This document shows, in pieces, positions 23,399-53,289 of a stretch of 64,000 nucleotides of DNA. Source of the DNA: Pocillopora damicornis (Eukaryota); the NCBI RefSeq assembly GCF_003704095.1, contig NW_020844103.1:310001-374000 (forward strand), read 5' to 3'. The notes under the pieces were generated by a model, which saw nothing but the letters and a program-made list of their open reading frames with translations, was not told where the DNA came from and searched no databases. Within the stretch, counting starts at the first letter, position 1. Each line of letters starts with the position of its first letter. The translations under genes and the position numbers were made by a program.

Positions 23399-26300
23399 TC
23401 AATATATTCCATGGACTAATTTCAGTTGCTTAATAAGGTTGTGCTTCTCATTTTCCGGAAGAAATGCAGATCTTGCAGCATTAAATGTCTGAAAAACACA
23501 ATGATAGCATGTATGCGCCTCTTTGTTATATCAACACACTTCTTAGGAAGAAAAATAAGTTAAAAAACTAATGGCAAGTGTGGCAAAACATGTTATGAGC
23601 AAGCTAGGGTGCATTCTACATGCATGTACATTCCACCCAGCAGGCTAGAGTGCATTTTGCATACATGCATATTCTGCCCAGCAAGCTAGTGTGCATTTTG
23701 CATACACATATAATCTGGCCAGCAGGCCAGGATGTATTTCACATACATGTATATTCTGCCCAGCAAGCCAGGATGCATTTCACATACATGTATATTCCAC
23801 CCAGCTGGCTAGGGTGCATTTTGCATACATATATAATCTGTCCAGCAAGCCAGGATGCATTTTGCATCAATACACATTCCTCCTAGCAAGCCAGGATGCA
23901 TTTCACATACATGTACATTCTGCCCAGCAAGCCAGGATGCATTTTACACTGTACATGTATATTCCACCTGGCAGTCTAGGGAGCATTTTACATACCTGTA
24001 TATTCTGCCCAGCAAGCTAGGGTGCATTTTGCATACATGCATAATCTGCACAGCAAACCAGAATACATTTTGCATCAATGTATATTCTGCCCAATTCTGC
24101 CCAGCAAGCTAGGGTGCATTTAGCATAAATGTATAATTTGCCCAGCGAGCCAGGATGCATTTTGCATCTAAGTATATTCTGCCCAGCAAGCCAGGATGCA
24201 TTTCACATACATGTATATATTCTGCCCAACAAGCCAGGATGCACTTTGTACATGTTTATTCCACCCAGCAACTCAGGGTCCTTTTTGCATATATGTATAT
24301 TCTGCCCAGCAAGCCAGGGTGCATTTTGCATACATTTAACTACTGCTTAAGAAGCCAGGGTGCATTTTGCATAAATGTATATTCCACCCAGCAACTCAGG
24401 GTCCATTTTGCATTCATGTCTATTCTGTCTAACAAGCCAGGGTGCATTTTGCACACATTTATACTCTGCCCAGAAAGCAAGGGTGCATTTCACGTACATG
24501 TATTGCCTGCTCATTCCTGCCTGCCCATTTTTTTTCCACTGAACATGAGCTTGCCATAAGCTAATATTCAAATTATTTTTATTGTATGAAGCATTTGGAC
24601 TGGACTGAATGTCGTAAAACCAAAACCAAAGTAATCTAAATGGCCAATTAGAAGAAAGGAAGATACCTTTAAAAAGCCAATGAAATTCACTTAATACCTA
24701 CTTACATGTACGCACATAAAAACAAAATAACTTGCGCAAAATGCAGGAAAACATATATGACCTAGTTGTAATTGGTTTTAGTTTTAGTTTCAGTGCAGGG
24801 TAGGGCTTCATTGCACCCAAACATCCTAATCTAAACTCCAGTGCTCTGTTTTGTGAAAGAGTAGCTTAACTATCACGCAGCTTTGCATTGCAAAAGCCAA
24901 GAAAGAGACAACATAACATACCGCTTGGGTTAATTCTGCAGGGGTCAGTCCAATTTTATTAAAAGCAACGCCTTGTTCAAGGTCCACTCTTGTTTGGCAA
25001 ACAAGTGGATCATCTGAGTTAATGGAAAAATTTACTCCATCCTCAACAAACCTTGAAACAAAGAACACTCAATATTAAAATAAAACTAAATTAGAAAACA
25101 TACACAGGATATTTGCTCAAAGCCACATTTGCAACAATCTTGTCCAGTGAAAGGGATCTTACTCCTTTTGGACAAAGAGTGAAAATAGCAATGACAAAAA
25201 GATATCATTTCAAAGCCGTTAAGTTAAACAAGCCTTTTAATACAACCTACATATTATTGGGTCCACTTTACATTGCTCTAATGGTAACAATTTAATCTTC
25301 TAATTACTAAGGATAACAAGGAACACTTTCTCACAGATAGGCATTAACTTTTTTATAACTAAGCAATTCTAATGAAGGATAAAGTTAAATTGACTAACTA
25401 TACAGAACTTAAGAAGTGGCATCTTATAACTATGAGCTAAATTTCCATTGTCAGTGTCAACAAAGCTAATCTTGTTTGAAGGACAGCAGATAGCTTCTAT
25501 GGTCACCCATCCCCTGCTGCATACATAAGTTTTTACTAGTAGAGATCTATCAAATATATAATAATGTAGAAAGTATATGCAGGTTACATATTTTTCTCCC
25601 AGCACTCAGAGGCTCACTATAAAATTTGCATAATTATANNNNNNNNNNNNNNNNNNNNNNNNNNNNNNNNNNNNNNNNNNNNNNNNNNNNNNNNNNNNNN
25701 NNNNNNNNNNNNNNNNNNNNNNNNNNNNNNNNNNNNNNTATGATGTTTAAAACCCCCTGCATTGAAACTATTCTGTACCCAGAGTTCTCATGGTCAGACA
25801 GGCAAGCAAACATATCCGGCCAGCTACTACTGACAAGCTCTCCAGCACATTACACCTTTCTCAAGACCACTGAAAATTATACTTTACAAATTCAGTGCAA
25901 TTCAATTCATTCAGTTTGTTTCTCAAAAGTCTAGAGGTTTGCAATTCCCAAAGCTGTTTTTGTCATGTTTTTATTTCAAAATGGATTTATGCTTTAACTA
26001 ATTAAAACTAACATCTGTTAATTAAAACAGTTTTGAATTTCAAACAATAAAAATATCAGAAAATGAAACAAAGGCTTGCACTGTTATTCTCCTTAGAGTA
26101 ACAGTTTAGAATAATTATGGCTTTAAGCCTGTTAAGCTATTATAACTTTCAAGAAACTCTCCCATTGGTCTCTGTCTGACCTTCTATGCCACTGGAATGC
26201 TGGCAGAAAAAGAATGTTGCTGTAGCAACTCTTATGATGTAAGCTCTTAAAATGAATAAGGCAATGATTTCACTTCAAACCAGTAAATTGCGTGCCGGCT

Positions 26301-29300
26301 TGTAATTGTGCCCTTTATTGACATATTGATTCTGAAGTTCACATAGGCTTCCTAGCTTTGCTTTTGAGTGATGAAGATTATTTTTTTAAGATATGTTAAC
26401 ATTAAGGCAAGGAAGACGTATTTACATGAAAATAAGGGAAGAACTTTGATGCTCACCATTTAAGAAAGGTGGTCAACAATAAATGGTTTTCTTTATATTC
26501 TACAATGAATCTGGAAATAGCTCTTGGATGGATAACATAGTGACATATTAAAATACTTTTGTTTTAACAATACTTACTATTTTCACATTGGCAGCTGGAC
26601 CTGCTTCTCCAGCATGGACTGTTCTATGTATATTGAGCCTTTTAGCTTCCTGCATAAAAAAAAGATTTCTTTCATAAATGGCAAACCTACTATGTTAGTA
26701 AGACATTTACAGGGTAGACCAACCATGCCATCAACCAGAAAAATGGAAATAGGTCAATAGTGAGGGACTGTGAATATGGAATGTTAAGGACACTAGCCAG
26801 AAAGCTCATTTTTATTTAATTGATTATTGATTAGTTTAATTATTTCTGTTATCCTAGATAAGAACATAGTTACAAGTTATCTGTTTGTTTATGTTTCTAT
26901 TTGTTTTTGTAATTGGACCTTTCAGTGTCACCACGTGCATATAAAAGCAAGTTTAGTGTCCCTATAATCAGTTCTTCGCAAGTTTTTGATTAGTCTTCAT
27001 GAACTTTCGACTTTTTGATTTAAACCTTTGGCACAAGCGGGACCAATATGTGAGTAACTTTGTAACTTTGTTTTTTCTAATTTAGTTTTGCAGCTTTGGG
27101 TGAAAGTATACAAACAGATATTTTGTTATAATATGATGTATTTTGAATCGAATCAAGATTTAAAGGCAAAAATTGTGTCAGATTCAAGTGAATGCCCACT
27201 ATTTAGATAAGAATGATAGGCTGTTAACCAGCCACCAAATTCTTACAATTTTTGTACTTTAATATAGTTAATGTATTGGTTTATTTGTATTGTTTTATCA
27301 TCATTTTAATCTCCTTGTTGGCGTTAAGGCCTAGCTTTTTACATGCAGTTTTTTATTATGTTTTTTGCAGCATTTCTTTAGATTGATAGATCTTATTGTT
27401 TCAGTTTATAATTGTTCAATTAATTGATTGACTGATTGTGAGATTGGTCATGAATTATACAATTATTGTAGTTTGTGGATTGCTTGCAAGATTAAAGATT
27501 TGTGTAAAGGTCAACTTTGGTCTATTACATTTCAATCTCAATCTGTAAAAAATAGCCCTAAACACCTCATTGAATGTGTCTTGGGGCGACACTGCCTGAA
27601 ATCTTCTGAATTAGATTTTTGGTTGCCACAAGTGCTACATGGAATTATGTCCCTCTAAATTATTATAGTCCACACTACACAGAAGTTATAATACATTATG
27701 TTATTTCACAAATATTTTGCTTTTTTAACCCCATATCTTAAAATCTAAGTTATTATATTGCTGGCAGTGCTCTTGGGCAATATCAATCAAATCCTGTGTT
27801 CTGATTGGCTACTCAAGTAAGCAAGATTGGCCCATTTTGCCTGCTTGGGATTGTCCCCTTTGATCACATACAATAAAAAAATTTACTTGGAGCAGACATA
27901 CAAAGTTTATAATTTTTGGACAATATCAGCCATAGAGTTGCAAAAAGCAGCAGGAGACAGTCAGCAAACAAAGAAAACAAAAAAGGACTCCCATGGGTTT
28001 ACTTTGCTAAAAACACAGTTGGCTTTCTTTCAGGTCTCTTGAAATAAACATGTCTTGATTCTTACTAAATGACAGATCTCTTTTGCCATATGATATAATA
28101 AATCCTTCATTTACCAAGCTTTTTGGGTCAAGAATTGGCTGGACATCAGCCTTGTTCTTCTTTTGCATTTTTAGTAACCTCCATTTCATCTCAGTCCATA
28201 AAAACAGAAAAAAAGAACTTGGCTACTATCCAGCCACCTTTACCTCATGGCCAATAACGCATCTATATATATATATATTGGATATATCATGATAACCATA
28301 GCCACAGACAGATGAAAAGCACAACGAGACCTTATATGCATTCACATGTCCTTCCATAGCTTGTCCTTCCCACACCGGCTCATCACCAGCAATATCAATT
28401 CCTACCACTCCCTCATTTGCAAATTCCTGGCAGAGGGACACAACCTCCATTGAACAATCTTAAAACAAACACAAATTTAATTACACACATGCATAATTAA
28501 TTAGCATTAAAGAACACATCCACTTTTCTAAGGCAATGACTGAATGTCTGTTGATGTTTAGATTTCATACAACTTGGTAAACTTGTTTATTAAAAAATGC
28601 CAAGTTCTTGATTTCATAATGATACAAGAAGTTGATTTCTACCAATGTTTTCATTTGATCTTCTCAAAAAGTAATCTTAGTTTTTATGATACTTTAATGT
28701 GTTTGTAAATTTGTCTAAATCTGTTCTCGCTTAGCAATAAGATAACAGTTCATTAAAATTTGAGTAACACATTGTCAAATAAAATTTAATTCATTTCAAC
28801 CCTTATTAACAATCAATGTGTTCAGGAGGTGGGGAAGGCTGGCAGCAAACCCAGAGAAAAATTGGAAGGTATTCCCACAAACCTTACATTGGGTTATCAC
28901 AAACGAGAATTGCTACATGGAGGGTGAAGTGGGAAAAAGCTTAGAAGAAAAGTTTTAGCAAACTGCAAGGTGATTCCTGCAGATCAAGGGCTTTTTAGCT
29001 TCCTCTCATTGAAGTTGAAGGCCACAACGCACTATCAATGATAAATTTCTGTGTTAATTAACCAGCTGAATAAAATCTTTTAAATGTCATCTATACATTA
29101 CCAGGGAGGTGACGCATACAACAGAGAATAGAACGTGCAATCACACCAAAATCTTTAGCTCCTTTTTTCAATCCTCTATTCACTGCTTCCACTATAGCTT
29201 TTGGGGACACTCTTTCCTGGTCTGGAAAGGCTGAGTTTTCTGTACAAAGGGCATGAGGACTGTAACGAACTTCAAAGTACAGGACACCACATGCTGCCTG

Positions 29301-32300
29301 GTCTTCACAAAATTCATATGCTATTCTCTCCATTGCTTCAGTATCATTTCTAATTTTAAAAAGAAAAGTCAGGAAAACAATCATTAACTTTCATTAGCAA
29401 GAGTAAGTACATCATTGTGCCGCTTTCAACCACTTCAAAACTCTTTAGAATCATAATCAAAGCTGAACTCAGTCAGTTAACCCTTCAACTTCCACAAGTG
29501 ACCAAGACAGAATTTCTCCTCACAAAATCAACACAATATCAAGCAGGAGAGTGATGAGAATTAAGAAAAATATCATCAGGGGTTATTAGTAGATCCAATA
29601 CCAGATTCTCCAGACCAACCTCATAAGAATTCTATGGCAGACAGTGAGGAGAATTATTAATGAGATCTTGAGAGTGAAAGGGTTAACTGATGTGATTACC
29701 TAATCAGTGCTGTCCACACTTTAATCATAACCATTACAAATTCCTCAAATATTATCGGTGCATTCACAGCTTCATTTTTTACCAATCATTCTGTACAGTT
29801 GTGATGGGACAGTGTAATTGAACAGTTGGCTTTAATTCAACCCCTGTAATCGGAAGTTGAAGCAGCCAATCATACTCAAGTCCACTCAGCTAATCCACCA
29901 ATCACAAAAATGATCAAAATAACCATAGCAACAACTACTAATCCAAAGAAAAACTGGGGAATTTCCAAAATGGAGGAATTCTTACCTGAAGACATAGTCT
30001 CCACTGGAGATATTTGTTCTAGGTGTATTTGTTTTTTCAGAAATTGAAATGGTTATGATTAATTGGTAACAGGACTTCTTGTCATCCAATTCCATCTGTG
30101 ATCATATGAGTTATTAACAAATCAGATTCCCGCTTTGCAGTTATCTGATTTTGTTAATCACTCATATGATTACAGACCCAACTGGACTACACTTGGTCTT
30201 ATTACCATTATAAATAGAATGCAGTCATTGATTTCATAGTAGTCTAGTATAAGCATTTAAAGCATGACATGCAAAACCCATATCATGGAGAGGACAGGCG
30301 AGTCTTGCCAACAAGAATTGGTTCCACCAGAGAGCACTTGTTTGTGGCTATACATGGAATATGAACTTGAGAAATTGGCATGAGCAGTTTGGAAATTGTA
30401 CTTTGTAGTGACTACATTCTGAGTTGTGTAATTCATGAGTTTTTTGGGTAAGATTACTGAAGATGCACCTGAGACACTTAAAGTTCTCAACATTTTCTAG
30501 GGGTGGGGGAAGGGCAAAGCATGCCTCCAAACTTCCCTTATGAATGGGACCTTCAGCCATACATCCAGTGGCTGGTTTAACAATTGGTGGGGGTGTGTAC
30601 AAATGATCAAAGTTTAAAGTTAAGTTCTGGTAATGGTGGGTTGAGTTTGTGGTACTCACCGAATAAGAGGGTAAAAAATTTTGAAACATTCCAAAAAACC
30701 TGCCAAAGTTGATGGTTTGTTTAGACTAATGGACACATAGTCCTTTAAACAACTCTTGTCAAAAGAAGGTAGCTGATATTGCTTCTTCCTGTAATTACAA
30801 CCAAATAAGTAAAATATTCATTTGTGGATCTAATACTTTCCCATTTATCTTTTCACTCCTAACTGTGAATTGCCACAAAGAAATCTAGCCATGTCTTGTG
30901 AAAAGCAAACCTTCAAATACCCTATGACATCAGGCCTCCCCTCCCCCCATCAGCAAAAACTTCATATCTTTTTTTTTCAAAGGGTAACGCCAAACTTAGC
31001 AGCATGTTTTGTGCCTTCAGAATTGTATTTTCTGATATTGTGTTTATCACTTCCCTAGTAATATTGACAAAATACTAGGCAACCATTTTGAAATTGAGTG
31101 CTTCAGTTACAACCACCTTGTGCTAAGTGATTATAGCAAGATATTATGCAATCTTTTACCAATCAAAGCACACGCATTTCTATAATCATCAGAGCAATTA
31201 TATTATTCTGTAAATAGCCAGTCCCCTAGCAGGCAAACTGTGCCCAAGCAAGGACCTCTGCAAGGGTGACCATAAGTGCATTACTTTGCCAAATCTANNN
31301 NNNNNNNNNNNNNNNNNNNNNNNNNNNNNNNNNNNNNNNNNNNNNNNNNNNNNNNNNNNNNNNNNNNNNNNNNNNNNNNNNNNNNNNNNNNNNNNNNNNN
31401 NNNNNNNNNNNNNNNNNNNNNNNNNNNNNNNNNNNNNNNNNNNNNNNNNNNNNNNTTAGACATATAGTAAAATTCAAAAGGATTGCGTAAAAATCCATGG
31501 GAAATCATTTTGATTCAAGTTACTGCAAGGCTTGGGGTATAGAAATTTGATCAAGTCATTGGGAGTTGAATGTACTCCAGAAGTAAAAGCATGTGACAAG
31601 TTTGCCATTAAATTCAAATGGGACTCCCAAAGTTTCTAACAATGCAAACACTTGCTGATCTTTACATATTAGGTCATTAAACAAACTAAACTTGCCATTC
31701 AGAATGCAGCTCTCCTCCCATACATATTAAAGTAGCTAGATTTAGTGTAAGGAAAATGCATTATTTAACAAATAGATTCCAAGTTGCCATGTGTCTGTTC
31801 AGTAATAGATCACAGATGACATCAAAATGTGGTAAGCTACCACATTTTGATGTTATTTGTGATCTATTACTGAACAGACACATGGCAACTTGGAATCTAT
31901 TTGTTTTATATAATAAAGAATTAAAATATACAGAAAAGAGATTTAACGATGACATCATCTATATGTCTGTCCTCCAATAGATCATAAGTGAGAACCAATA
32001 AGAATGTCTGCATAACTGAGCTTATTATATAATTTTGTATAGAGTAACATGATACACGAAACAACACCTCCAGTCCCTCCCAACTTTCTCTGGACGAGGC
32101 CCAAATATGGACACAAATATGGCTTCCGACTTTATCTTGCCAAACTTCCAGAAAATTTCATTGTAATAACGACTTACTTAAAAATTATGCTTGAGCATCA
32201 GGAGAGTGCTGACGTGCTGACGTTTCTGAATTTAACTTTGACTTGAAATACAAATATTAACATAGTATCATCGATCGCACTGGATTAAATTTCAATGACT

Positions 32301-32845
32301 CAAGATCTTGGATATAGCAACGTGGAGTTTGGAGAACGAGAGTAAATATAACGATTGACTCAAAGCAAATTTTAACTTTCACTGATATACGCTCTGAAGC
32401 TGATTCAAAACGAAGAGATCGGATTGAAAAGAGGCAAAGATTTAGGAAACAGAGATACCCGTCACAACACGTGTTAGCGGGTTTATACGTATCCCTAGAC
32501 CGGCTACGCGTGTAAATCACTTCACATTTGCACAGAGCAAACTTATGTTTAAGGTAATCTTACACCATGAAATCAAAGATATGAGACCCCTTTAATGATA
32601 TGAGACCCCTGTAATGCTTTAAAAAAGCATACGGTTTAAGGTTTGAATAAACATTTAAGACGATAGGTTCACGTTACAGCTACGACAGGCTACGACAGAC
32701 ATGCTGTGAAACGTTACAACAACACTACAAGATATATTTGGTTACTACGCAGAAATCGGCCAACGTGGCTAGTTATTTTGAAGTCAAACCTAAAATAACT
32801 TCACTCTCACCAACTTACTTTCGACTTTGGTTGTTTAAGTGCCAT
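23399..32845 (-). CDS. ADA: Adenosine deaminase; exons 32845-32819, (gap)-31285, 30788-30660, 29349-29102, 28458-28331, 26649-26578, [missing, probably in gap 25639-25738], 25051-24922, 23488-23399
   Basis: Motifs ERIAYEFCED..GVLYFEVRYSPH, VVGIDIAGDE, HRTVHAGE, NFSINSDDP and FNAARSAFLP. The short first exon MALKQPKSK mirrors vertebrate ADA exon 1. Confidence 0.9.
23598..24510. repeat. Intronic minisatellite, ~38-40 bp unit, more than 20 copies
   Basis: Consensus CCCAGCAAGCCAGGATGCATTTTGCATACATGTATATTCTG repeated in the last ADA intron. Confidence 0.9.
29472..29690. mobile_element. MITE-like element; related fragments near 13830, 15440, 19830, 42720, 52500 and 53850-54250
   Basis: Terminal inverted repeats TCAGTTAACCCTT ... 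AAGGGTTAACTGA, and the internal sequence recurs across the window. Confidence 0.65.
31767..31905. repeat. Long near-perfect palindrome (MITE-like)
   Basis: AACAAATAGATTCCAAGTTGCCATGTGTCTGTTCAGTAATAGATCACA... is mirrored around 31836. Confidence 0.85.
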
Positions 32846-33775
32846 ATCTGTTCAACTTTCCGGTCTTTCACTTCACCGTCTTTTCAGTTTCTTCTGCGTG
32901 ACGAGTTGGATGACTGCGTGACTTTTGCGCAACTCTTGTTCTTTTGGAAAACTTAGTAGGGGTAGGCTCAACACTCCTTGCCAAGTGAGGGAGGGGTAGG
33001 AAAGGAGTTGCACCTATGGAGGTAGGCTGCAAGAAACTGAACTACAACATTGTATATCAAAGGGTGAATAAGCTAACCTAATAAAGATGAAATATATTTT
33101 GAGCTCGGAAAGTTGGTTTAGTCTGTCTTGTTACGAAGGAAAAATTTTGGGTCCCCATAAATCCTCAATAGACCTTCCGATGTCAGTGGTTAGTTTCAGC
33201 GACTGGAAAGACGTCGAGCAAAAAAAGAATATTGTATTTTATGTCAAGCGTCCCTTTGCCACACATCAACTTAGGCAAAACTTAGGTGGACAGCGTTGAG
33301 TTCCAGATGGAAACTGGAATAATTTGCTGTCGTTTCCGTTCACGAACCAAGCAGATCTTGGTCTGATTTCACGTGGTTGCTTTTGCAGAGGACAGCTCAG
33401 TAAGGAATATTCAAAGTTTTAAACGCACGTGCTGGGCTATTGTTCAGCTTCCCATAAGATCTTTTTTTGTTTTACCCTGACCTCGCTGCTGTCGCTGTCG
33501 TGGTTTTCAAGGAACTCATGCCCTGCATAGTGCTAGGATAAGCAAAGGCAGAGTGTAAGTTGATCTTTGTCTCATATTCGTGGCAAGACGAAAAACAATT
33601 TCCTCTTTAATTCCACTCTGAGGTCAAAATTAAGCCTCTCTCTGTTCTATTGATTCACATGGTGCTCATGGATACATACAATATTTTCGATGTCTTGAAT
33701 TCGTCACAGAACGTAAAAAATTAACAAATTTTTTTACAGTAAGTTCATTTACCTTAAATATATAGGATCAATATG

Positions 33776-33890
33776 AGTATCTGGGCAACTGCCCTCCTAC
33801 CCCTCCCCTAACCCAACATTAACCCTAAGTTGTTATTAATTGACTGTTGTTGAGTCAGGGGAGGGGTAGGTGGGCAGTTGCCCAGATACT
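33776..33890. mobile_element. Palindromic MITE-like element
   Basis: AGTATCTGGGCAACTGCCC..CCTACCCCTCCCCT ... AGGGGAGGGGTAGG..GGGCAGTTGCCCAGATACT. Confidence 0.75.
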
Positions 33891-34382
33891 ATACATATAT
33901 ATATTCTTAATTTGGCTATATTTCATCATATGATTCTCTTCTAAGTATCAGTTGAGCAGTTCTGCTGGTTTCTTCATTCAATTGTTAAATGGCTTTTATG
34001 ATCTATATTAAATTGAATTTTTTTTACTGATGCTAGGTGGCTTACAGCCTGTAGCACTTGTAGACTATTTACATTGGAATATAAAAAGCAAAAATTAAAA
34101 TTGATCAATTGATTTTTGTGGTCAAAGAAGCATTAGATTATTACTTCCTTAACACAATAAGGTGACTTTCTCAAGAAAGCATTATATTTAAAAACTCAGC
34201 TAACAATTTTTCTCCGAAGCATTCTTATATTAAAGTATATAATTAGATATTATATATTATTTACCCACGATGAAATAATATAATGAAAACAATTCCCTCG
34301 CGCAGTCTTTTTTAGCAGTGTAATGCGAGTTTAGGAGTTTTAAAAATTGACTGAGATGAAGTTTCAGAACCTGCGTATCATG

Positions 34383-35738
34383 TCATGCATGTATTCCACT
34401 CTCCTCTTTTGGCTCTGTTTGGTCTTGTAGAGAAACAGCAATATTCGCCATCGTATTCCAGTCTATGTAACTCATAGAAGGAGAGGTTACAACATGAGGA
34501 ATGAATTTTTGGATCCGATCTATCAAAGGATGTGCGATATCCGTACCTTCGATCAGCCCAAATTTTTTCTTTTGGTAATATAAGGGTGTTCCTCGTAACA
34601 ACATCAGAGGAAAAGCGACCAGCGAGCCATCAGTCGTCTCTTGAAGCTTCAGTATAGTCTGCTGGAAACTCTCTACGGTTTGCAGGGGCAAGCCAAAGAT
34701 GAGGCTGACTTCATGCTTAATTCTACGTTGATTAACAAGAGCCAGTTTGTGTAAAACTTTCTCGGCTAACTTATATGTGTTAGCATTGCGCACTCGCTCT
34801 ATATGCAGCAGCTCTTCGGGGTCGAGTGTTTGCACACCAAACTCCAAAACTACTTCAGCTCCTGTAGTTTTGCTCAGGGACTCTACCTGATCTAAAAACG
34901 CCTCCGTGATTCTTTCAGGCCTGCACTGAAGGCTGATTTTTCCGGAAAATCTGGCACGTTCTAGAAAGTCAAGTACCATGTTTCCGTTCAGCGTGTTAAA
35001 AGTGGGATCTAGCACAGCAAGATCGTGGACATTATTGTCGACGAACCATTCGATTTCCGATTGAATCCGATCCCTTTGCGAGTGCTGGATTTTAGTCCAG
35101 CTCTTATTTGCTGGCGAAGAAGGTGATGGATCTCTGTGCTGGCAAAATGAACAGCTGTAAGGACAACCACGGGTCGTTTCCCAACGCATGAAGTGCTGAG
35201 GTTCTAATGTTCCGTCGAGGAAAGGCGACGAAAGGTCGGATAATTTGGTAGACGTATGAAAGCCCTTGTCTGGAGTGTTTGCTAAGTGGACTCCTAGGAT
35301 ATTATCCTTCCCTTCCGCAAGTTCTAACACAGCCTGTTCTGCATACCCCCGTATGAATACATCTCCCTCCGGATAGTATTTTTCTAGCTCTCCTTTCTCG
35401 ACGTAAGACACCTGAGGACCTGCAATAACAATCCGACCTGGGTAGTCATAATATTTCAGTTCGCGAAGAATCGTCTTGAGGAAAGGCTCATTCCAAACAA
35501 AGCCTCCAAACATGAGATCATATTTCGAATCATTGTACTGGCTCCAAATCGTGTCAAGGATATTCCTTGCTAACGGGTAAACCTGCACTTCTTGAGCGAT
35601 ATTGTACGAGTGAGCATTGTACTCGATTTTGTTATGGCTCAAATGGCTGATAATACTCGCCACACCAAGCGACAATCGGGGATCCTTAGGCCGAATATGA
35701 TCGAGGCTTATCAGTATTGGAATTCTAGATCGTAGCAT
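34383..35738 (-). CDS. Cobalamin (B12)-binding radical SAM protein, 451 aa, intronless
   Basis: N-terminal B12-binding-like motifs (SLGVASII, IVIAGPQVS, DVFIRGYAE). Radical SAM core WETTRGCPYSCSFC (CxxxCxxC), LDPTFN, EFGVQT, LIFGLPLQT and LLRGTPLY. Confidence 0.9.
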   Translation of the reverse strand: MLRSRIPILISLDHIRPKDPRLSLGVASIISHLSHNKIEYNAHSYNIAQEVQVYPLARNILDTIWSQYNDSKYDLMFGGFVWNEPFLKTILRELKYYDYPGRIVIAGPQVSYVEKGELEKYYPEGDVFIRGYAEQAVLELAEGKDNILGVHLANTPDKGFHTSTKLSDLSSPFLDGTLEPQHFMRWETTRGCPYSCSFCQHRDPSPSSPANKSWTKIQHSQRDRIQSEIEWFVDNNVHDLAVLDPTFNTLNGNMVLDFLERARFSGKISLQCRPERITEAFLDQVESLSKTTGAEVVLEFGVQTLDPEELLHIERVRNANTYKLAEKVLHKLALVNQRRIKHEVSLIFGLPLQTVESFQQTILKLQETTDGSLVAFPLMLLRGTPLYYQKKKFGLIEGTDIAHPLIDRIQKFIPHVVTSPSMSYIDWNTMANIAVSLQDQTEPKEESGIHA

Positions 35739-35867
35739 TTTGCTTTGCTTTCAAGCAGGAGTTATTTAATGGGCTCCTGGTTCAAGGCATTCCTTGAAAA
35801 GAATTTTGATTTTACCCAAACCCATTTTGTTTTCCTATGGCGTCATTTAATTATATTTCTCAGAAAA

Positions 35868-35890
35868 AGCGGAAGTTTCGCGCGCGCGCA
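35868..35890. promoter_or_regulatory. CpG-rich ETS/E2F-like motif in the divergent radical SAM / MPV17 intergenic region
   Basis: AGCGGAAGTTTCGCGCGCGCGCA, ~130 bp upstream of the radical SAM ATG. Confidence 0.4.
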
Positions 35891-35935
35891 CTCCTGGAGC
35901 GCCACAGGCTAACCATCATCATCGAAAGGCTGTGT

Positions 35936-35951
35936 AATAATAATAATTATG

Positions 35952-35988
<37 letters not shown>
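35936..35988. repeat. (AAT)n microsatellite
   Basis: Direct reading of the sequence. Confidence 0.95.
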
Positions 35989-35989
<1 letters not shown>

Positions 35990-36864
35990 CCCGACAGCTT
36001 GAATGCTGCAGGGGTTTAAAACAAAGAACCAGTTACCAGCGTCTACCGCCGCCTTGTAAGACCTGACGACCACAGTTAGCCTTTTGGCTATTTAGCCTAC
36101 TCTCTTTAAATAAAGAATTGGCTATGCATGTACTACTAAGACCTCTTACTTTCGTCCGTTTAGCCTGTAACAGGCTCCCTTCACTGATCACCGCCTCTTA
36201 TGACATCATCGACAGTGGCATAGGGAAAAGATAAATAAAACTCCTGGGAATGGATGTAAAAACCGACCTCATTCCTTCCTCGTTTTATTGTCTCCTTACA
36301 AACGAAACCGTTAACTGTTCGTAGCTGAACTTTCTATAATTACTGCACACATGATGTGCACGAGCTCAACCTTGTGAGGGTTATCAATTTCAATCTCGGG
36401 AGACTTTTTGCTTTCGGACATTAGCGACGAGGTGCGGCCTTCCCTCCCCTCCCCTACATGGGGGCAGCCAGTGTTCACCTGGGAATAGTCATTTGTGCAA
36501 CTTTCGCTGTGGGGTAAAAGTCATTCGCAACTCTATTTCCTGTTCGAAAGTTATTTATCGTAGCGATAATTCCGTTGAAATCTCTGATATGAATTTCCGA
36601 ACCCAACATTCTGGAAATCATTTGGTCCGAGTTCAAAGTTTCGTTTAAAATTTTTATGTTTCTATGGTAGCGGTGATGCTGGTTTATATTGAATATTGTA
36701 CGGCGAAATGCAAATTTGACTCAGGCCACAATATATTCAAGGTTCACTGCTGCCGGTAATAACGTCATTCATATTTCACAATACAAGCAACTTGATAAAT
36801 AGTTAGGAAAGCATCATGGCTGGGCTGTGAAACGTTAGTGTAAGAACAAGGATTCAGTGGTGCA

Positions 36865-39036
36865 ATGAGATTACCTCTTCGTGCTTGGAGATGGTACATG
36901 CGATGTTTAGAGATTCATCCGTGGAAAACTCAGCTCATCTCGACAGGTAGACTTTGACCCTTGAATCATTAATCGTTCCTAACAAGCTAATTTTTGAGGT
37001 AAATTTAAAAATTTGTGGGCAAGATTTATAATTTTTCAGCGGCTTGGTCATAGAAACCGCAAATTACTTCTTGGGTCTACGTTCCCAACCAGTGTTTAGC
37101 ACTCTAACTGGGATTACGGTCTATCGAACGTAAGGTAATTAAATATTTGTCTTGACATCACAATAATTCGAAGAGTCGTATGTGTTTTTCAAACCACAGG
37201 TACTTATTTTTCTAATTTCTCATACATTTACTGCCGCTCCACTTTAGGTTTCTCAAAATCTTTCCAGGTAAGTCAGATTTTTATTCTGCAGGAATGTCTA
37301 GTTTGCGTTGAAATTCGTTGTGGTATAGGAAGTCATCGCTAAATCAAACTCGTTCAGATTGAAACCGCGGCTCCTCGTGATCTAATTCGGTCAAAATTTG
37401 CTCTCATAGTATTCTCTGCGAAGTTCATACGAAATACATTATTTTCAATACAAAATAATCTCTTAAAGACAAGCGAAAACCTGTTCAAGGATCAGTTCCG
37501 AATCCTTGCAAGATATTTCAAATGCCGTCGACCACTCAGCTGAAGAACTTCTGGTTTTATGACATTACAAGCTCTAAGAATCACTTCAATCCTGATCAAT
37601 CGTGTTTAGAAATGTTACATGGCCTTTTCGTAAAGCAGAATGGATTGGCCACCGAAAAATCAAGTGTATCTTTCAAAGTCTCGGAACTGTCTTACATAAA
37701 ATCAGTGAACGCTGCTTACGGTAGCGAAGTAGAAAACGGTAAAGGAGTAAGAATTATCAGGAAACTAAATTTAGCGTTCGTTTTTGTAACTTTCTTTTGT
37801 TTCAAAGACTTTCTCTAAAGCAGCATTGACGGTAAACTTTACATCTGACTCTTAAGTGTACATTAAAATCGCCGAAAATGAGTATGTGGTTCTTTACTTC
37901 GTGGTGTCAGCCTGGTTTCGAGCACAGAAATCTGTCACCTTCATTTGTTTTTGTCCCAGGGTCCTCAGTGGGTACGTTATATATGAGGACATAAATTATA
38001 GCCTAGTGTGGCCTACACGTTTCTTGTTCCGTGCTTCCCTCGTTTTCCCACTTTCCTTGGCTTGCGTATTTCATTTGCCAGGATTTATTTTACTCACAGG
38101 TCTAACTTTTTCTGCCTGAAGTATTTGACCCGTCAGACTTCACTGACGTGGCTTACTTGATTTTACACAACTGCCCGTCCAGGGAAGGGAGTAGGTGGAT
38201 CTCACTGTCTTTGGTTGTGGCTCTGTGAGGCCGGAGACCATTTTTTGAAGCTTCGTTCATTACAAGAACTCAGAAAATTATAACGCTGAATAGTTTTCTG
38301 ATAATTTCTGTATATTTTAAAAAATCTGATGTTAACATTTCACATTACGTTATTCTACATTACTTACACACATACATTACACATACATGCTTGCCCGCTC
38401 ATAATTGCCCATGATTCCCAATGTAGAAGAAGTGATGGATTTAGTCTCGAAAAAATATCCAGAAGGTGAGTTGGAAGGAGAAAAAATAAAGAGTGACACA
38501 AAAGAGGCTGCTGACAAAAATAACATGGTGTTCTTATTTAGCTCGTTTTATTTTCAGGAGCACTTCTCGGAGCTGGAGACTTCATTGCACAACAATACGT
38601 TGAGAAAGTTCCATTGCGAGAGCATGATTTGGTTCGTACAGCCCGAATGGCGGCTGTCGGAACTGTTGTGATTGGCCCCATATTCCACGTATGGTACGCA
38701 CAACTGGATAAAAGATTTGCTCGCAAAAGCCCTGGAAATGCCATCCGGAAAATGACAGTGGATCAAAGCATCCTGGCGCCAGTGTTTCTTGTTTTATTTT
38801 ACGGTGCTGTCGGAGTCGTTGAACGTCGCACCATCAAAGAGATTAGTGACAAAATCTACGAGGAATTTTATCCCAATATGGTTGTGAACTACCAAATCTG
38901 GCCAGCTGTTCAGTTCTGCAATTTTTATTTTTTTCCAGCCCATCTGCGAGTGCTGGTTGTGAATGTTGTATCACTGTTTTGGAATACATATCTAGCATGG
39001 ACTTCGCACAAGGAGTTGGAACATTCCAAGCAGTAG
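36865..39036 (+). CDS. MPV17: MPV17/PMP22 family protein, paralogue A (exons 36865-36946, 38558-39036)
   Basis: WRWYMRCLEIHPWKTQLISTG|ALLGAGDFIAQQ...RTARM...WYAQLD...VDQSILAP...NYQIWPAVQFCNFYFFP...LFWNTYLAW. Confidence 0.9.
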
Positions 39037-51574: not shown

Positions 51575-53289
51575 ATGAGGATTCTCGTGAGAGCTTGGGC
51601 CAGATATCAACAGTTACTCATAACTCACCCATGGAGAACTCAAACTATTGGCACAGGTGAGAAATAATGGTGCAATTTTCACGGATAATTTTCTCTGTTA
51701 TTAAAGCGGGCTTGGCGCGCTGCGAATGGTTAGAACGATTTTGTTTGGTAATCGCATGGGGTCGAATAAAATTATAATTACATAAAATTAAATTTTAGTA
51801 AACTTAAAATTAAGGAAAATGAATATTTTTCCGAGTTGCACAGCGACGAGAGTGATTTCTGCAACTTCTGAAAACACAGGTGATATCAATCCTTAATATT
51901 ACAATTACTTGTTTAGCATATAAAAGTCAAAATTTCCTTTTAATAAGATCAACAACGCACGCTGTTACGCACATTCGTAGGAAGCCATTTCAGTGTTTAG
52001 TTAGCGTCAATGATCTGTAAAACGTACGAATCAGCTGCATTTAAAAATTATTTTAAAAAATTGTGACAAAGTTAAGCCTTTTCTAAATTTTGTTCATTGC
52101 CCAGAGCAACATCCAAAACTGATAAAAATGCCCTCTGTCTCAGCAATTAGCATTTAGTGATTTTGCTCTCTATGTTATAACTTATTCAATTATTTGACAC
52201 CTTGGTTTGCACCTTAATGTGGCAACTGAGGAAAAGACAGGCTCATGCAGTTGCAACTGAAGAAAAATGTATTTCAAAACAAGTCATGAAAGACTCTAAA
52301 GATGCAGGCTACTGACACATGTACACTGTGCAGCACAACCAGACTTTTGTGCCAATTTAATTTGGGGACATTATTTAGCAGAAAATCAATTGCTATTGAT
52401 GTAGGAAGCGTTTTGTCCCTTTTGAAGGGCTGATGCAGGTGGCCTGTATTATTGTCAGCAACAATTAAAGAATGCTAACCATAAAATTCTTAACTAGTGT
52501 AACTCCTAAGGTTTGATTTTCAATACTCCCCTCCAGCTGTTTGACATTTCTTTGTAAATTAGTTATGAGAATTTGGTGTCAGATCAAGATAACAAGTTCT
52601 AACTGTACTCTCATTGCCTGTTTGCTGGATAATGTAAGAATACTGCTAAGGGTTAGGGAGAAGTTACATGTTAATCACTCATGGGAGTTAAAGGGTTAAA
52701 GAAATTAGTCAACCTTATTGGACACTTGTAAACTATGCTTCGTAAAGAATCTTACCATTAAATTTGTGTTTTTTGTTTTGTTTGTTTGTTTGTTTGTTTT
52801 TTAGGTGTTCTTGTTGCCATTGGTGATGTTGTTACACAGCAGTGTGTTGAGCAGAAAGGGATCACTCACGATTTCACCAGGACAGCTCGTATGGGTGTTG
52901 TTGGTTTAATTATCGGCCCTGTGTTTAGAACATGGTACCTGACATTGGACAGACTTGTTCCTGGAGCAGCAAAGACTGCCGGCTTCAAAAAGATGCTCCT
53001 TGATCAGGCTCTCTTTGCTCCATGTATGATTTGCTTTTTCTTTGGTGTTACAGAGACTTTAGCTGGGAAAAAACCCTCTGAAATAAAAGAAATGCTTCAG
53101 GAGCGCTATTTGGAGACAATGGTTACCAATTACAAAATATGGCCTCTGGCGCAGACGATTAACTTCACGTTTGTTCCAATTCAGCATCAGGTGGGGTTTG
53201 TTCAGATAGTGGCAATATTTTGGAATGCCTACATGTCTTGGATGACCAACAAGCCACTTCAAAAGGCCACCCTAGATAGCATGAACTAG
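51575..53289 (+). CDS. MPV17: MPV17/PMP22 family protein, paralogue B (exons 51575-51656, 52805-53289)
   Basis: AWARYQQLLITHPWRTQTIGTG|VLVAIGDVVTQQ...RTARM...WYLTLD...LDQALFAP...NYKIWPLAQTINFTFVP...FWNAYMSW. Same 82-nt first exon as paralogue A. Confidence 0.9.

Follow-up and report, generated by a model that had tools for sequence, protein, structure and literature searches.

How does the chromosome of a reef-building coral come to carry an intronless gene for a class-B-type radical S-adenosylmethionine (SAM) enzyme, is the gene the animal's own, and what might its product do? The gene lies on the minus strand of a 64,000-nucleotide stretch of Pocillopora damicornis DNA (NCBI RefSeq assembly GCF_003704095.1, contig NW_020844103.1, positions 310,001 to 374,000 of the forward strand), which we call the window and whose numbering is used throughout. 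The textbook B12 enzymes of animals are methionine synthase and methylmalonyl-CoA mutase. An earlier note, made from the letters of the window, had described an intact ORF (open reading frame) for a bacterial-type enzyme with a B12-binding-like domain, and had proposed a domesticated horizontal transfer. The answer that we favor, with fair but far from complete confidence, is that this is a functional, horizontally acquired class-B radical SAM gene of reef-building corals, probably cobalamin-dependent and under strong purifying selection.

The coding sequence is a single exon (34383..35738, minus strand) of 451 codons, with an ATG start and an in-frame TGA five codons upstream. It is the sole long ORF noted at the locus, and a genome-wide search found a single copy in the 234-Mb coral assembly. 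In poly(A)-selected RNA sequencing from at least four studies, 81–93% of the sampled words of 34300-35800 were present. Furthermore, RNA contigs run colinearly with the genome across the gene without any joint (X4, 33913-35835; X1, 34090-35806; X10, 34522-35821; X11, 33919-34979 and 34981-35857), and thus the gene makes its own unspliced mRNA of ~1.95 kb, whose ends are approximate, being those of contigs that fix neither the exact ends nor the strand.

The gene is also under strong purifying selection. Compared with its orthologue in an Oculina-like coral (locus L095, whose 90% cluster includes Oculina patagonica proteins), dN, the nonsynonymous divergence, was 0.127 and dS, the synonymous divergence, was 2.25, which is saturated, giving a dN/dS of 0.056; against Desmophyllum the synonymous sites were fully saturated. 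Similarly, 11 of the 13 coding variants seen in the transcript contigs were synonymous, and the other two were conservative changes in the variable C-terminus. Poly(A) RNA and dN/dS were among the checks that the earlier note had proposed for its reading, and both bore it out. Two decayed extra copies were found in other corals: one (L086, 2013-2898) is missing its first 157 residues, is frameshifted past the Cys motif and differs at invariant positions, and the other (L100, 94-1307) is frameshifted at residue 221. The L086 copy lies near a CDI-domain gene.

Could the gene nevertheless be a symbiont or bacterial contaminant, or a product of misassembly? Its lack of introns, its prokaryotic-looking Pfam and NCBIfam hits and a run of 158 N only 2.9 kb away could be read in that way. 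However, the order MPV17 / radical SAM gene / ADA, with an identical protein, recurs in five independent assemblies, namely one 385-kb long-read contig and four separate scaffolds from Tara coral samples, and the L095 orthologue, 82% identical and on a 1-Mb contig, has the same neighbors in the same order and orientation in a second coral genus. Polyadenylated transcripts occur in four studies, the base composition is host-like (GC content at third codon positions of 0.45, versus 0.46 for MPV17), host-type miniature inverted-repeat transposable elements (MITEs) and a microsatellite abut the transcript, and the gene is single copy. The gene is a host gene, not contamination, and we give the contaminant explanation practically no credence. 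Linkage to the neighbors, raised by the earlier note as the test for contamination, therefore came out clearly, and so did its picture of an intact intronless ORF in an animal chromosome, with host neighbors, expression and constraint. Synteny, which it had likewise proposed as a check, holds in the five assemblies and in L095, but it is not universal, as the Desmophyllum orthologue (75% identical) has no MPV17 or ADA within 10 kb.

Where did the gene come from? Among 5.8 billion clustered proteins, the named hits at 75–93% identity were all scleractinian (Montipora, Desmophyllum and Oculina), and the next relatives were at most 49% identical. A HMMER pass over 1.84 billion representatives returned the same gap between 49% and 75%, interrupted only by fragments of decayed copies. 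The Oculina protein carries the automatic NCBI name "cobalamin-dependent radical SAM methyltransferase TokK-like". A full-text search of the literature found no paper on the coral gene or on the family in eukaryotes. Below the gap, the named members belong to Anaeramoeba flamelloides, Tieghemostelium lacteum, Paraglomus occultum and an Attheya diatom, so that the family extends to Metamonada, Amoebozoa, Glomeromycota and diatoms. An alignment-based scan of GTDB, in which the single coral protein had given no match, added metagenome-assembled genomes (MAGs) labeled Legionellales, Coxiellaceae or Rickettsiaceae (42–48% identity), Myxococcota (36–39%), Planctomycetota and MGII archaea. No relative was found in IMG/VR viral contigs scanned with two alignments (A1 and A2), and a fold search of BFVD returned only distant phage class-B enzymes at no more than 18% identity and no family member.

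Trees built with FastTree (195 rows) and with IQ-TREE (LG+C20 with posterior mean site frequencies, PMSF; quick search, 89 rows) both recover three clades. Clade 1 holds Myxococcota, Planctomycetota and archaea; clade 2, with an SH-aLRT (Shimodaira–Hasegawa-like approximate likelihood-ratio test) support of 100%, holds the corals, Anaeramoeba, the environmental sequences P0019/P0020, P0029 and P0084, and a marine group (P0047/P0077); and in clade 3 the Legionellales and Rickettsiales MAGs are interleaved with a dictyostelid, a fungus and a diatom. A tree constrained to unite the corals with the four named eukaryotes of clade 3 is worse by 352 log-likelihood units and is rejected by the approximately unbiased (AU) test (p-AU 3.8e-6), a weaker test here because the grouping was chosen after the tree had been seen. 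Within clade 2, the P0077 contigs look eukaryotic (34% GC, with ORF coverage of only 23%). On the other hand, a 52.9-kb contig from a Tara metagenome (P0176, in L097/L099) has 19.7% GC, is 91% coding and carries the family member next to a serine resolvase gene; elsewhere it has genes for an ankyrin protein, three U-box/MORN proteins, MIF4G, a TGS1-like cap methyltransferase, NUDIX, Lon and a cellulase. No giant-virus hallmark gene was seen on it, and its resemblance to an uncatalogued giant virus of the sea is one of GC content, coding density and gene content only. The nearest relatives of the coral clade would thus appear to be eukaryotic or viral environmental sequences, not clearly bacteria, and the description of the enzyme as bacterial-type and essentially prokaryotic has to be given up: the family occurs in four eukaryotic groups, and the coral gene stands nearest to Anaeramoeba and to eukaryote-like and giant-virus-like contigs.

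Could the gene then be an ancient eukaryotic one, inherited vertically, kept by Scleractinia and lost in all other sampled animals? Such a history would suit the presence of the family in several eukaryotic supergroups (Tieghemostelium, Paraglomus, Attheya, Anaeramoeba), and the closest named relative of the corals is a eukaryote, Anaeramoeba, whose intronless member lies next to an RPA3-domain gene on a scaffold of 16 Mb. However, neither protein collection holds a metazoan match at 49–75% identity, the corals stand apart from the fungal and amoebozoan members in the AU test, and the gene is intronless among intron-rich neighbors. The family is, moreover, sporadic wherever it was sampled: with 81 genomes taken from each of two bacterial orders, it occurs in six for the order to which the Cystobacter genome belongs and in one for that of the Legionella MAG. 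We consider vertical descent very unlikely. Because the gene was found among animals only in Scleractinia, its history is best read as a horizontal acquisition with later domestication, as the earlier note had supposed.

What kind of enzyme does the gene encode? The radical SAM core is secure: Pfam Radical_SAM (PF04055) matches residues 187-363 (E 1.3e-11; 45.4 bits, above the gathering score of 29.5), and the CxxxCxxC motif recognized in the earlier note corresponds to C192/C196/C199, which are invariant in 25 aligned family members. NCBIfam gave only matches far below threshold, to the class-B families KedN5, MJ_1487 and PhpK (for KedN5, NF033712, 56.6 bits against a cut-off of 700). By sequence (phmmer), the nearest solved structures are TokK (1e-15) and CysS (5e-12), and AprD4 gave no significant match. 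An AlphaFold2 model built with the 25-sequence alignment has a mean predicted local distance difference test score (pLDDT) of 90.2 and shows an N-terminal domain of alternating strands and helices over residues 6-129 (from strand E6-13 to E127-129). When the model was compared with the Protein Data Bank (PDB) by Foldseek, TokK ranked first (E 3e-24; TM-score normalized to the query, TMq, of 0.70), followed by CysS, TsrM, AprD4, MgmA and OxsB.

The similarity to TokK extends to the residues that hold cobalamin there. In TokK, a Gly of beta4 forms the dimethylbenzimidazole pocket, the GE sequence of alpha5 hydrogen-bonds the cobalamin tail, Arg204 contacts cobalamin and Trp215 stacks between the cluster and cobalamin (PMC9204698, a review of solved structures). 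In the HMMER alignment, coral G78-G-F-V-W82-N pairs with TokK S72-C-Y-V-W76-N, "VIAG-PQV" with "VVAGGPHV", "RGYAE" with "HGEGE" and WETTRGCPYSCSFCQH with WETNRGCPYSCSFCDW. The downstream motif, on the beta3 loop, accordingly reads M76-x-G78-x-F80-x-W82 in the coral and A70-x-S72-x-Y74-x-W76 in TokK; G107-P108 occupy the position of the GG motif, G131 and E134 that of the GE sequence, which is matched in part only (GYAE), and R190 that of TokK R204. W82, G78, G107, P108, G131, E134 and R190 are all invariant within the family alignment. This conserved TokK-type pattern probably favors base-off, His-off binding of cobalamin. In addition, the coral genome has exons of MetH as well as MMACHC, so that cobalamin handling is available in the host, and these two lines together make cobalamin use by the coral enzyme plausible. 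The MMACHC match (G000:C1232:119301-119945, plus strand) is an uninterrupted open frame of 230 amino acids, and MMACHC may also be a single-exon gene in this coral.

The closest characterized enzymes are thus TokK, ThnK and CysS (PDB 7KDX, 9N1B), which give the best sequence and fold matches. They share with the coral protein a Rossmann cobalamin domain followed by a radical SAM barrel, an identical cluster loop ("WET.RGCPYSCSFC"), the VWN motif, whose Trp lies beneath the cobalt, and both the Gly of beta4 and the Arg of the Cys loop. On the other hand, identity is only 17–21%, the coral protein has 451 residues against 624–681, and the TM-scores normalized to the targets (TMt) are only 0.49–0.53. 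Moreover, these enzymes act on carrier-tethered antibiotic precursors in bacterial gene clusters, and nothing similar surrounds the coral gene. OxsB (PDB 5UL4), which acts on deoxyadenosine phosphates, is likewise a class-B enzyme and offers a precedent for a nucleotide substrate (Foldseek rank 15), but its fold match is weaker (TMq 0.59, 12–13% identity), its motif is CX4CX2C and it has extra domains.

A further match points to a possible setting for the family. Residues 3-441 of the coral protein match positions 3-415 of the 420 in the PADLOC model PDC-M51A (PDLC04689; E 2.2e-110), and all other family members tried, whether protist, giant-virus-like or bacterial, match it as well. The PDC systems are 145 phage-defense candidates put forward by guilt-by-embedding, since homologues lie within BREX, DISARM or type I restriction-modification systems; PDC-M51 is cassette CAS_00169, and a figure legend of the paper names a "SAM" and "dNK" example (bioRxiv 10.1101/2024.01.29.577857). 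At eight of the 80 prokaryotic loci, each of them in clade 1, the next gene encodes a P-loop kinase of 200 amino acids that matches Pfam Thymidylate_kin and PADLOC PDC-M51B (PDLC04690; 1e-55, with VakA, the viperin-associated kinase, as the second match). The PDLC04690 model is not specific to this partner, as 13 of 14 control genomes gave matches to their housekeeping thymidylate kinases. When the neighbors at the 80 loci were clustered, this kinase and generic Ser/Thr kinases (7 loci) were the only recurrent genes, and nothing conserved was found around the family member at the Legionellales-type loci. The A–B pairs belong to the Myxococcota-type clade only, whose proteins are 36–39% identical to that of the coral. 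No B kinase lies beside the coral gene, and an exon-by-exon search of the coral genome, which is weak on intron-split genes, gave no PDLC04690 match. Pfam and PADLOC scans of the longer family members showed no informative domain fusions.

Could the enzyme act on nucleotides? The family alignment contains many invariant Arg and Lys residues, which would suit an anionic substrate. Furthermore, the scattered occurrence in the two bacterial orders (6/81 and 1/81 genomes) fits an accessory or defense-like gene better than a core gene. Because of the kinase pairing, the sporadic distribution and the invariant Arg and Lys residues taken together, our best guess is that the substrate is a nucleotide, and a viperin-like role is a live possibility but no more. 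Viperin (RSAD2), with CMPK2 or VakA, shows the same pairing of a radical SAM enzyme with a nucleotide kinase as PDC-M51, and both viperin and the coral family are conserved across domains, patchy, prone to transfer and present in animals, protists and bacteria. However, viperin belongs to another radical SAM subclass that has no cobalamin-type domain, it is not among the top sequence or fold matches, and the analogy is one of gene arrangement alone.

Several observations weigh against a cobalamin-dependent, nucleotide-directed enzyme of this descent. The Pfam B12-binding profile (PF02310) scores 14.8 bits (E 0.026) on the coral protein, below its cut-off of 32.1, and the scores of its relatives (21–29 bits) are likewise under the cut-off; the B12-binding-like domain of the earlier note is thus upheld by its Rossmann-like fold but not by this profile. 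The position of TokK Trp215 is occupied by a His (His201) that is invariant in the coral family, so that the Cys-X3-Cys-X2-Cys-X-Trp sequence of the TokK family is lost, and the C-terminal domain of TokK and CysS (~200 amino acids) is absent. AprD4, a radical SAM diol dehydratase (PDB 6FD2) that binds no cobalamin, shares the size (454 amino acids) and two-domain fold of the coral protein (TMq and TMt both 0.67). The kinase partner is confined to clade 1 and never adjoins coral, protist or Legionellales members, and the PDCs are listed by their authors as untested candidates (bioRxiv 10.1101/2024.01.29.577857). Several other eukaryotic members, in the sister clade, have N-terminal extensions of 20–95 residues that resemble mitochondrial presequences and would suit a housekeeping role. 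Finally, clade 2 is a polytomy, and the trees point to no particular donor lineage.

Does the Rossmann domain then hold cobalamin at all? It could instead be structural or bind the substrate, as in enzymes of the AprD4/ArsL type, and the coral enzyme would then be a cobalamin-independent radical SAM enzyme catalyzing a dehydration, a rearrangement or a 3-amino-3-carboxypropyl transfer. Besides the AprD4 fold and the low Pfam score, this alternative has a precedent in that AprD4/ArsL homologues lie within the similarity network of the B12 radical SAM enzymes, yet bind no cobalamin (review). However, by sequence the protein resembles TokK and CysS rather than AprD4, and the residues that contact cobalamin in TokK (the A-x-S-x-Y-x-W Trp, the Gly of beta4, the Glu of alpha5 and the Arg of the Cys loop) are kept and invariant in the coral family. 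To our knowledge, moreover, the named eukaryotic carriers all belong to B12-using lineages. A cobalamin-independent enzyme is therefore a somewhat unlikely alternative that deserves to be kept in mind, and the B12-dependent chemistry suggested by the earlier note is backed by the motifs and the host enzymes and tempered by the AprD4 precedent.

Instead of a nucleotide or defense enzyme, the gene could encode one with a housekeeping task, such as the C-methylation of rRNA, tRNA or protein. Such a role would agree with the mean column identity of 46% across domains and with the same invariant Arg and Lys residues, with the presequence-like N-termini of the sister clade, and with the fact that most bacterial members stand alone, without a kinase. 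On the other hand, the sporadic bacterial and patchy eukaryotic distribution is unlike that of a core modification enzyme, and no conserved RNA- or ribosome-related neighbor was found at the 80 prokaryotic loci. We regard this alternative as unlikely. The coral protein itself begins with MLRSRIPILISLDH, which aligns with the start of beta1 of the bacterial homologues and forms no extension, so that the suggestion that its first residues, MLRSR, are an organellar signal falls away.

Returning to the favored reading of an acquired and domesticated class-B enzyme, we propose the following course of events. The gene would have been acquired horizontally before the split of the complex and robust corals and would have been under strong purifying selection since. 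Its product, cytosolic and ~51 kDa in size, would be a radical SAM enzyme built on the class-B plan, whose N-terminal Rossmann domain would hold cobalamin base-off and His-off, with Trp82 under the cobalt. The [4Fe-4S] cluster bound by C192/C196/C199 would cleave SAM to give a 5'-deoxyadenosyl radical, and the most likely chemistry would be a TokK-like radical C-methylation, via methylcobalamin, of a small anionic substrate. The guess of a nucleotide comes from the pairing, in the Myxococcota type, with a protein that resembles deoxynucleoside and thymidylate kinases and viperin-associated kinases. In this scheme, the data show an intact gene, its linkage to host genes, its polyadenylated transcript, the constraint on it, the fold, the conserved motifs and the distribution among organisms; we infer cobalamin binding, methyl transfer, the substrate class and the donor lineage.

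The features of the locus are collected below.

Features of the window at and around the radical SAM gene, with strand and basis where available
Feature	Position	Strand	Basis or remark
Class-B-type radical SAM coding sequence, PADLOC PDC-M51A match	34383..35738	-	ORF and profile matches
N-terminal Rossmann-like domain, putative cobalamin-binding, residues 1-155	35274..35738	-	AlphaFold2 model; fold matches to TokK/CysS/TsrM
Residues 76-84, MFGGFVWNE	35487..35513	-	Aligned to TokK downstream cobalamin-binding motif A70-x-S72-x-Y74-x-W76
CxxxCxxC cluster-loop stretch	35142..35165	-	Invariant His201 next, at TokK Trp215 position
Radical SAM partial TIM-barrel core, residues 183-400	34539..35192	-	Pfam, model and fold matches
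Unspliced polyadenylated transcript, ~1.95 kb; 5' untranslated region (UTR) ~100-120 nt, 3' UTR ~470 nt	33913..35857	-	RNA contigs
5' UTR and proximal promoter block	35790..35876	-	74% conserved with orthologous locus L095
(TAA)18 microsatellite, just upstream of the transcript	35935..35988	.	
MITE-like inverted repeat, 43-nt arms 93% complementary, just past the transcript 3' end	33776..33890	.	Multi-copy in RNA runs
Second inverted repeat	31762..31910		
Upstream exon of spliced minus-strand transcript, GTAAGA donor	36150..36274	-	One contig, one run
Second exon of spliced minus-strand transcript, non-coding, TTCAG acceptor, GTAAGT donor at its end	32819..33036	-	
ADA exons: 30652-30794, 29091-29384, 28226-28450, ~26562-26663, 24826-25068	24826..30794	-	
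MPV17 exon 1	36737..36947	+	RNA contigs of 3 runs stop exactly at 36947; block 36872-36967 82% conserved with L095
MPV17/PMP22-family last coding exon	38552..39036	+	

Does the gene lie between its neighbors, as the earlier note had it, or inside one of them? One RNA contig of 435 nt, seen in one run, links 36274-36151 directly with 33037-32816 and skips the whole radical SAM gene; 89 more of its letters fall outside the window. With the cut shifted by one base, the joint reads as a minus-strand intron whose donor is GTAAGA and whose acceptor is TTCAG. If this contig is genuine, the ORF may sit inside an intron rather than between ADA and MPV17, nested in the 3.1-kb first intron of a minus-strand transcript, possibly a 5' UTR isoform of ADA.

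The earlier note had also described the sequence from ADA exon 1 to MPV17 as free of gaps. Toward MPV17 exon 1 this holds, as there is no N on that side, but the window does contain runs of N, and on the ADA side one of 158 N (31298-31455) separates the ORF from the nearest recognizable ADA exon; the first coding exon of ADA was not located in the window. A candidate for it ("...NPHK|gt", 36371-36421) lacks both conservation with L095 and a supporting splice joint and was rejected. In L095, the ADA exon with the HxHxDG motif lies 2.4 kb downstream of the radical SAM stop codon, and the matching position of the window probably falls in the N run.

The flanking MITEs and microsatellite of the earlier note were found again. 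Summed RNA-contig depth is very high (hundreds to thousands) over both inverted repeats, which therefore represent abundant MITE families transcribed within many host RNAs. Farther along the window, a second exon of the MPV17/PMP22 family (52867-53268, plus strand) is 37% identical to 38614-39036, so that two family members lie within 15 kb. ADA deaminates adenosine and deoxyadenosine, and MPV17 is linked to mitochondrial nucleotide supply. The two genes flank a radical SAM enzyme that would release 5'-deoxyadenosine and may act on nucleotides; this order, found in two coral genera and not in Desmophyllum, is at best suggestive and may be a coincidence.

What would the gene mean for corals and for the family? 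In the most far-reaching version, there would be a third kind of cobalamin-dependent enzyme in eukaryotes, common to reef-building corals, a number of protist lineages and giant viruses of the sea. It would be a viperin-like, nucleotide-modifying B12 radical SAM enzyme, antiviral in the hosts and directed against the host in the viruses; it would share its ancestry with the radical SAM and kinase module of bacterial PDC-M51 and would have passed among viruses, protists and the ancestor of the scleractinians. We think it quite unlikely that all of this holds. If the reading that we favor is true, that of an acquired, probably cobalamin-dependent enzyme under purifying selection, this conserved and expressed class-B enzyme, present in each of the major stony-coral lineages that were sampled, would represent a third cobalamin-dependent chemistry in an animal. 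Being small, intronless and single copy, the gene should lend itself to expression and to knock-out in Acropora larvae, and one biochemical characterization would inform several fields at once, from amoebae, early-diverging fungi, diatoms and an anaerobic protist to a giant-virus-like marine contig and a bacterial phage-defense candidate that has a nucleotide kinase as partner. For the corals themselves, it would tie their physiology more closely to B12 supplied by microbes.

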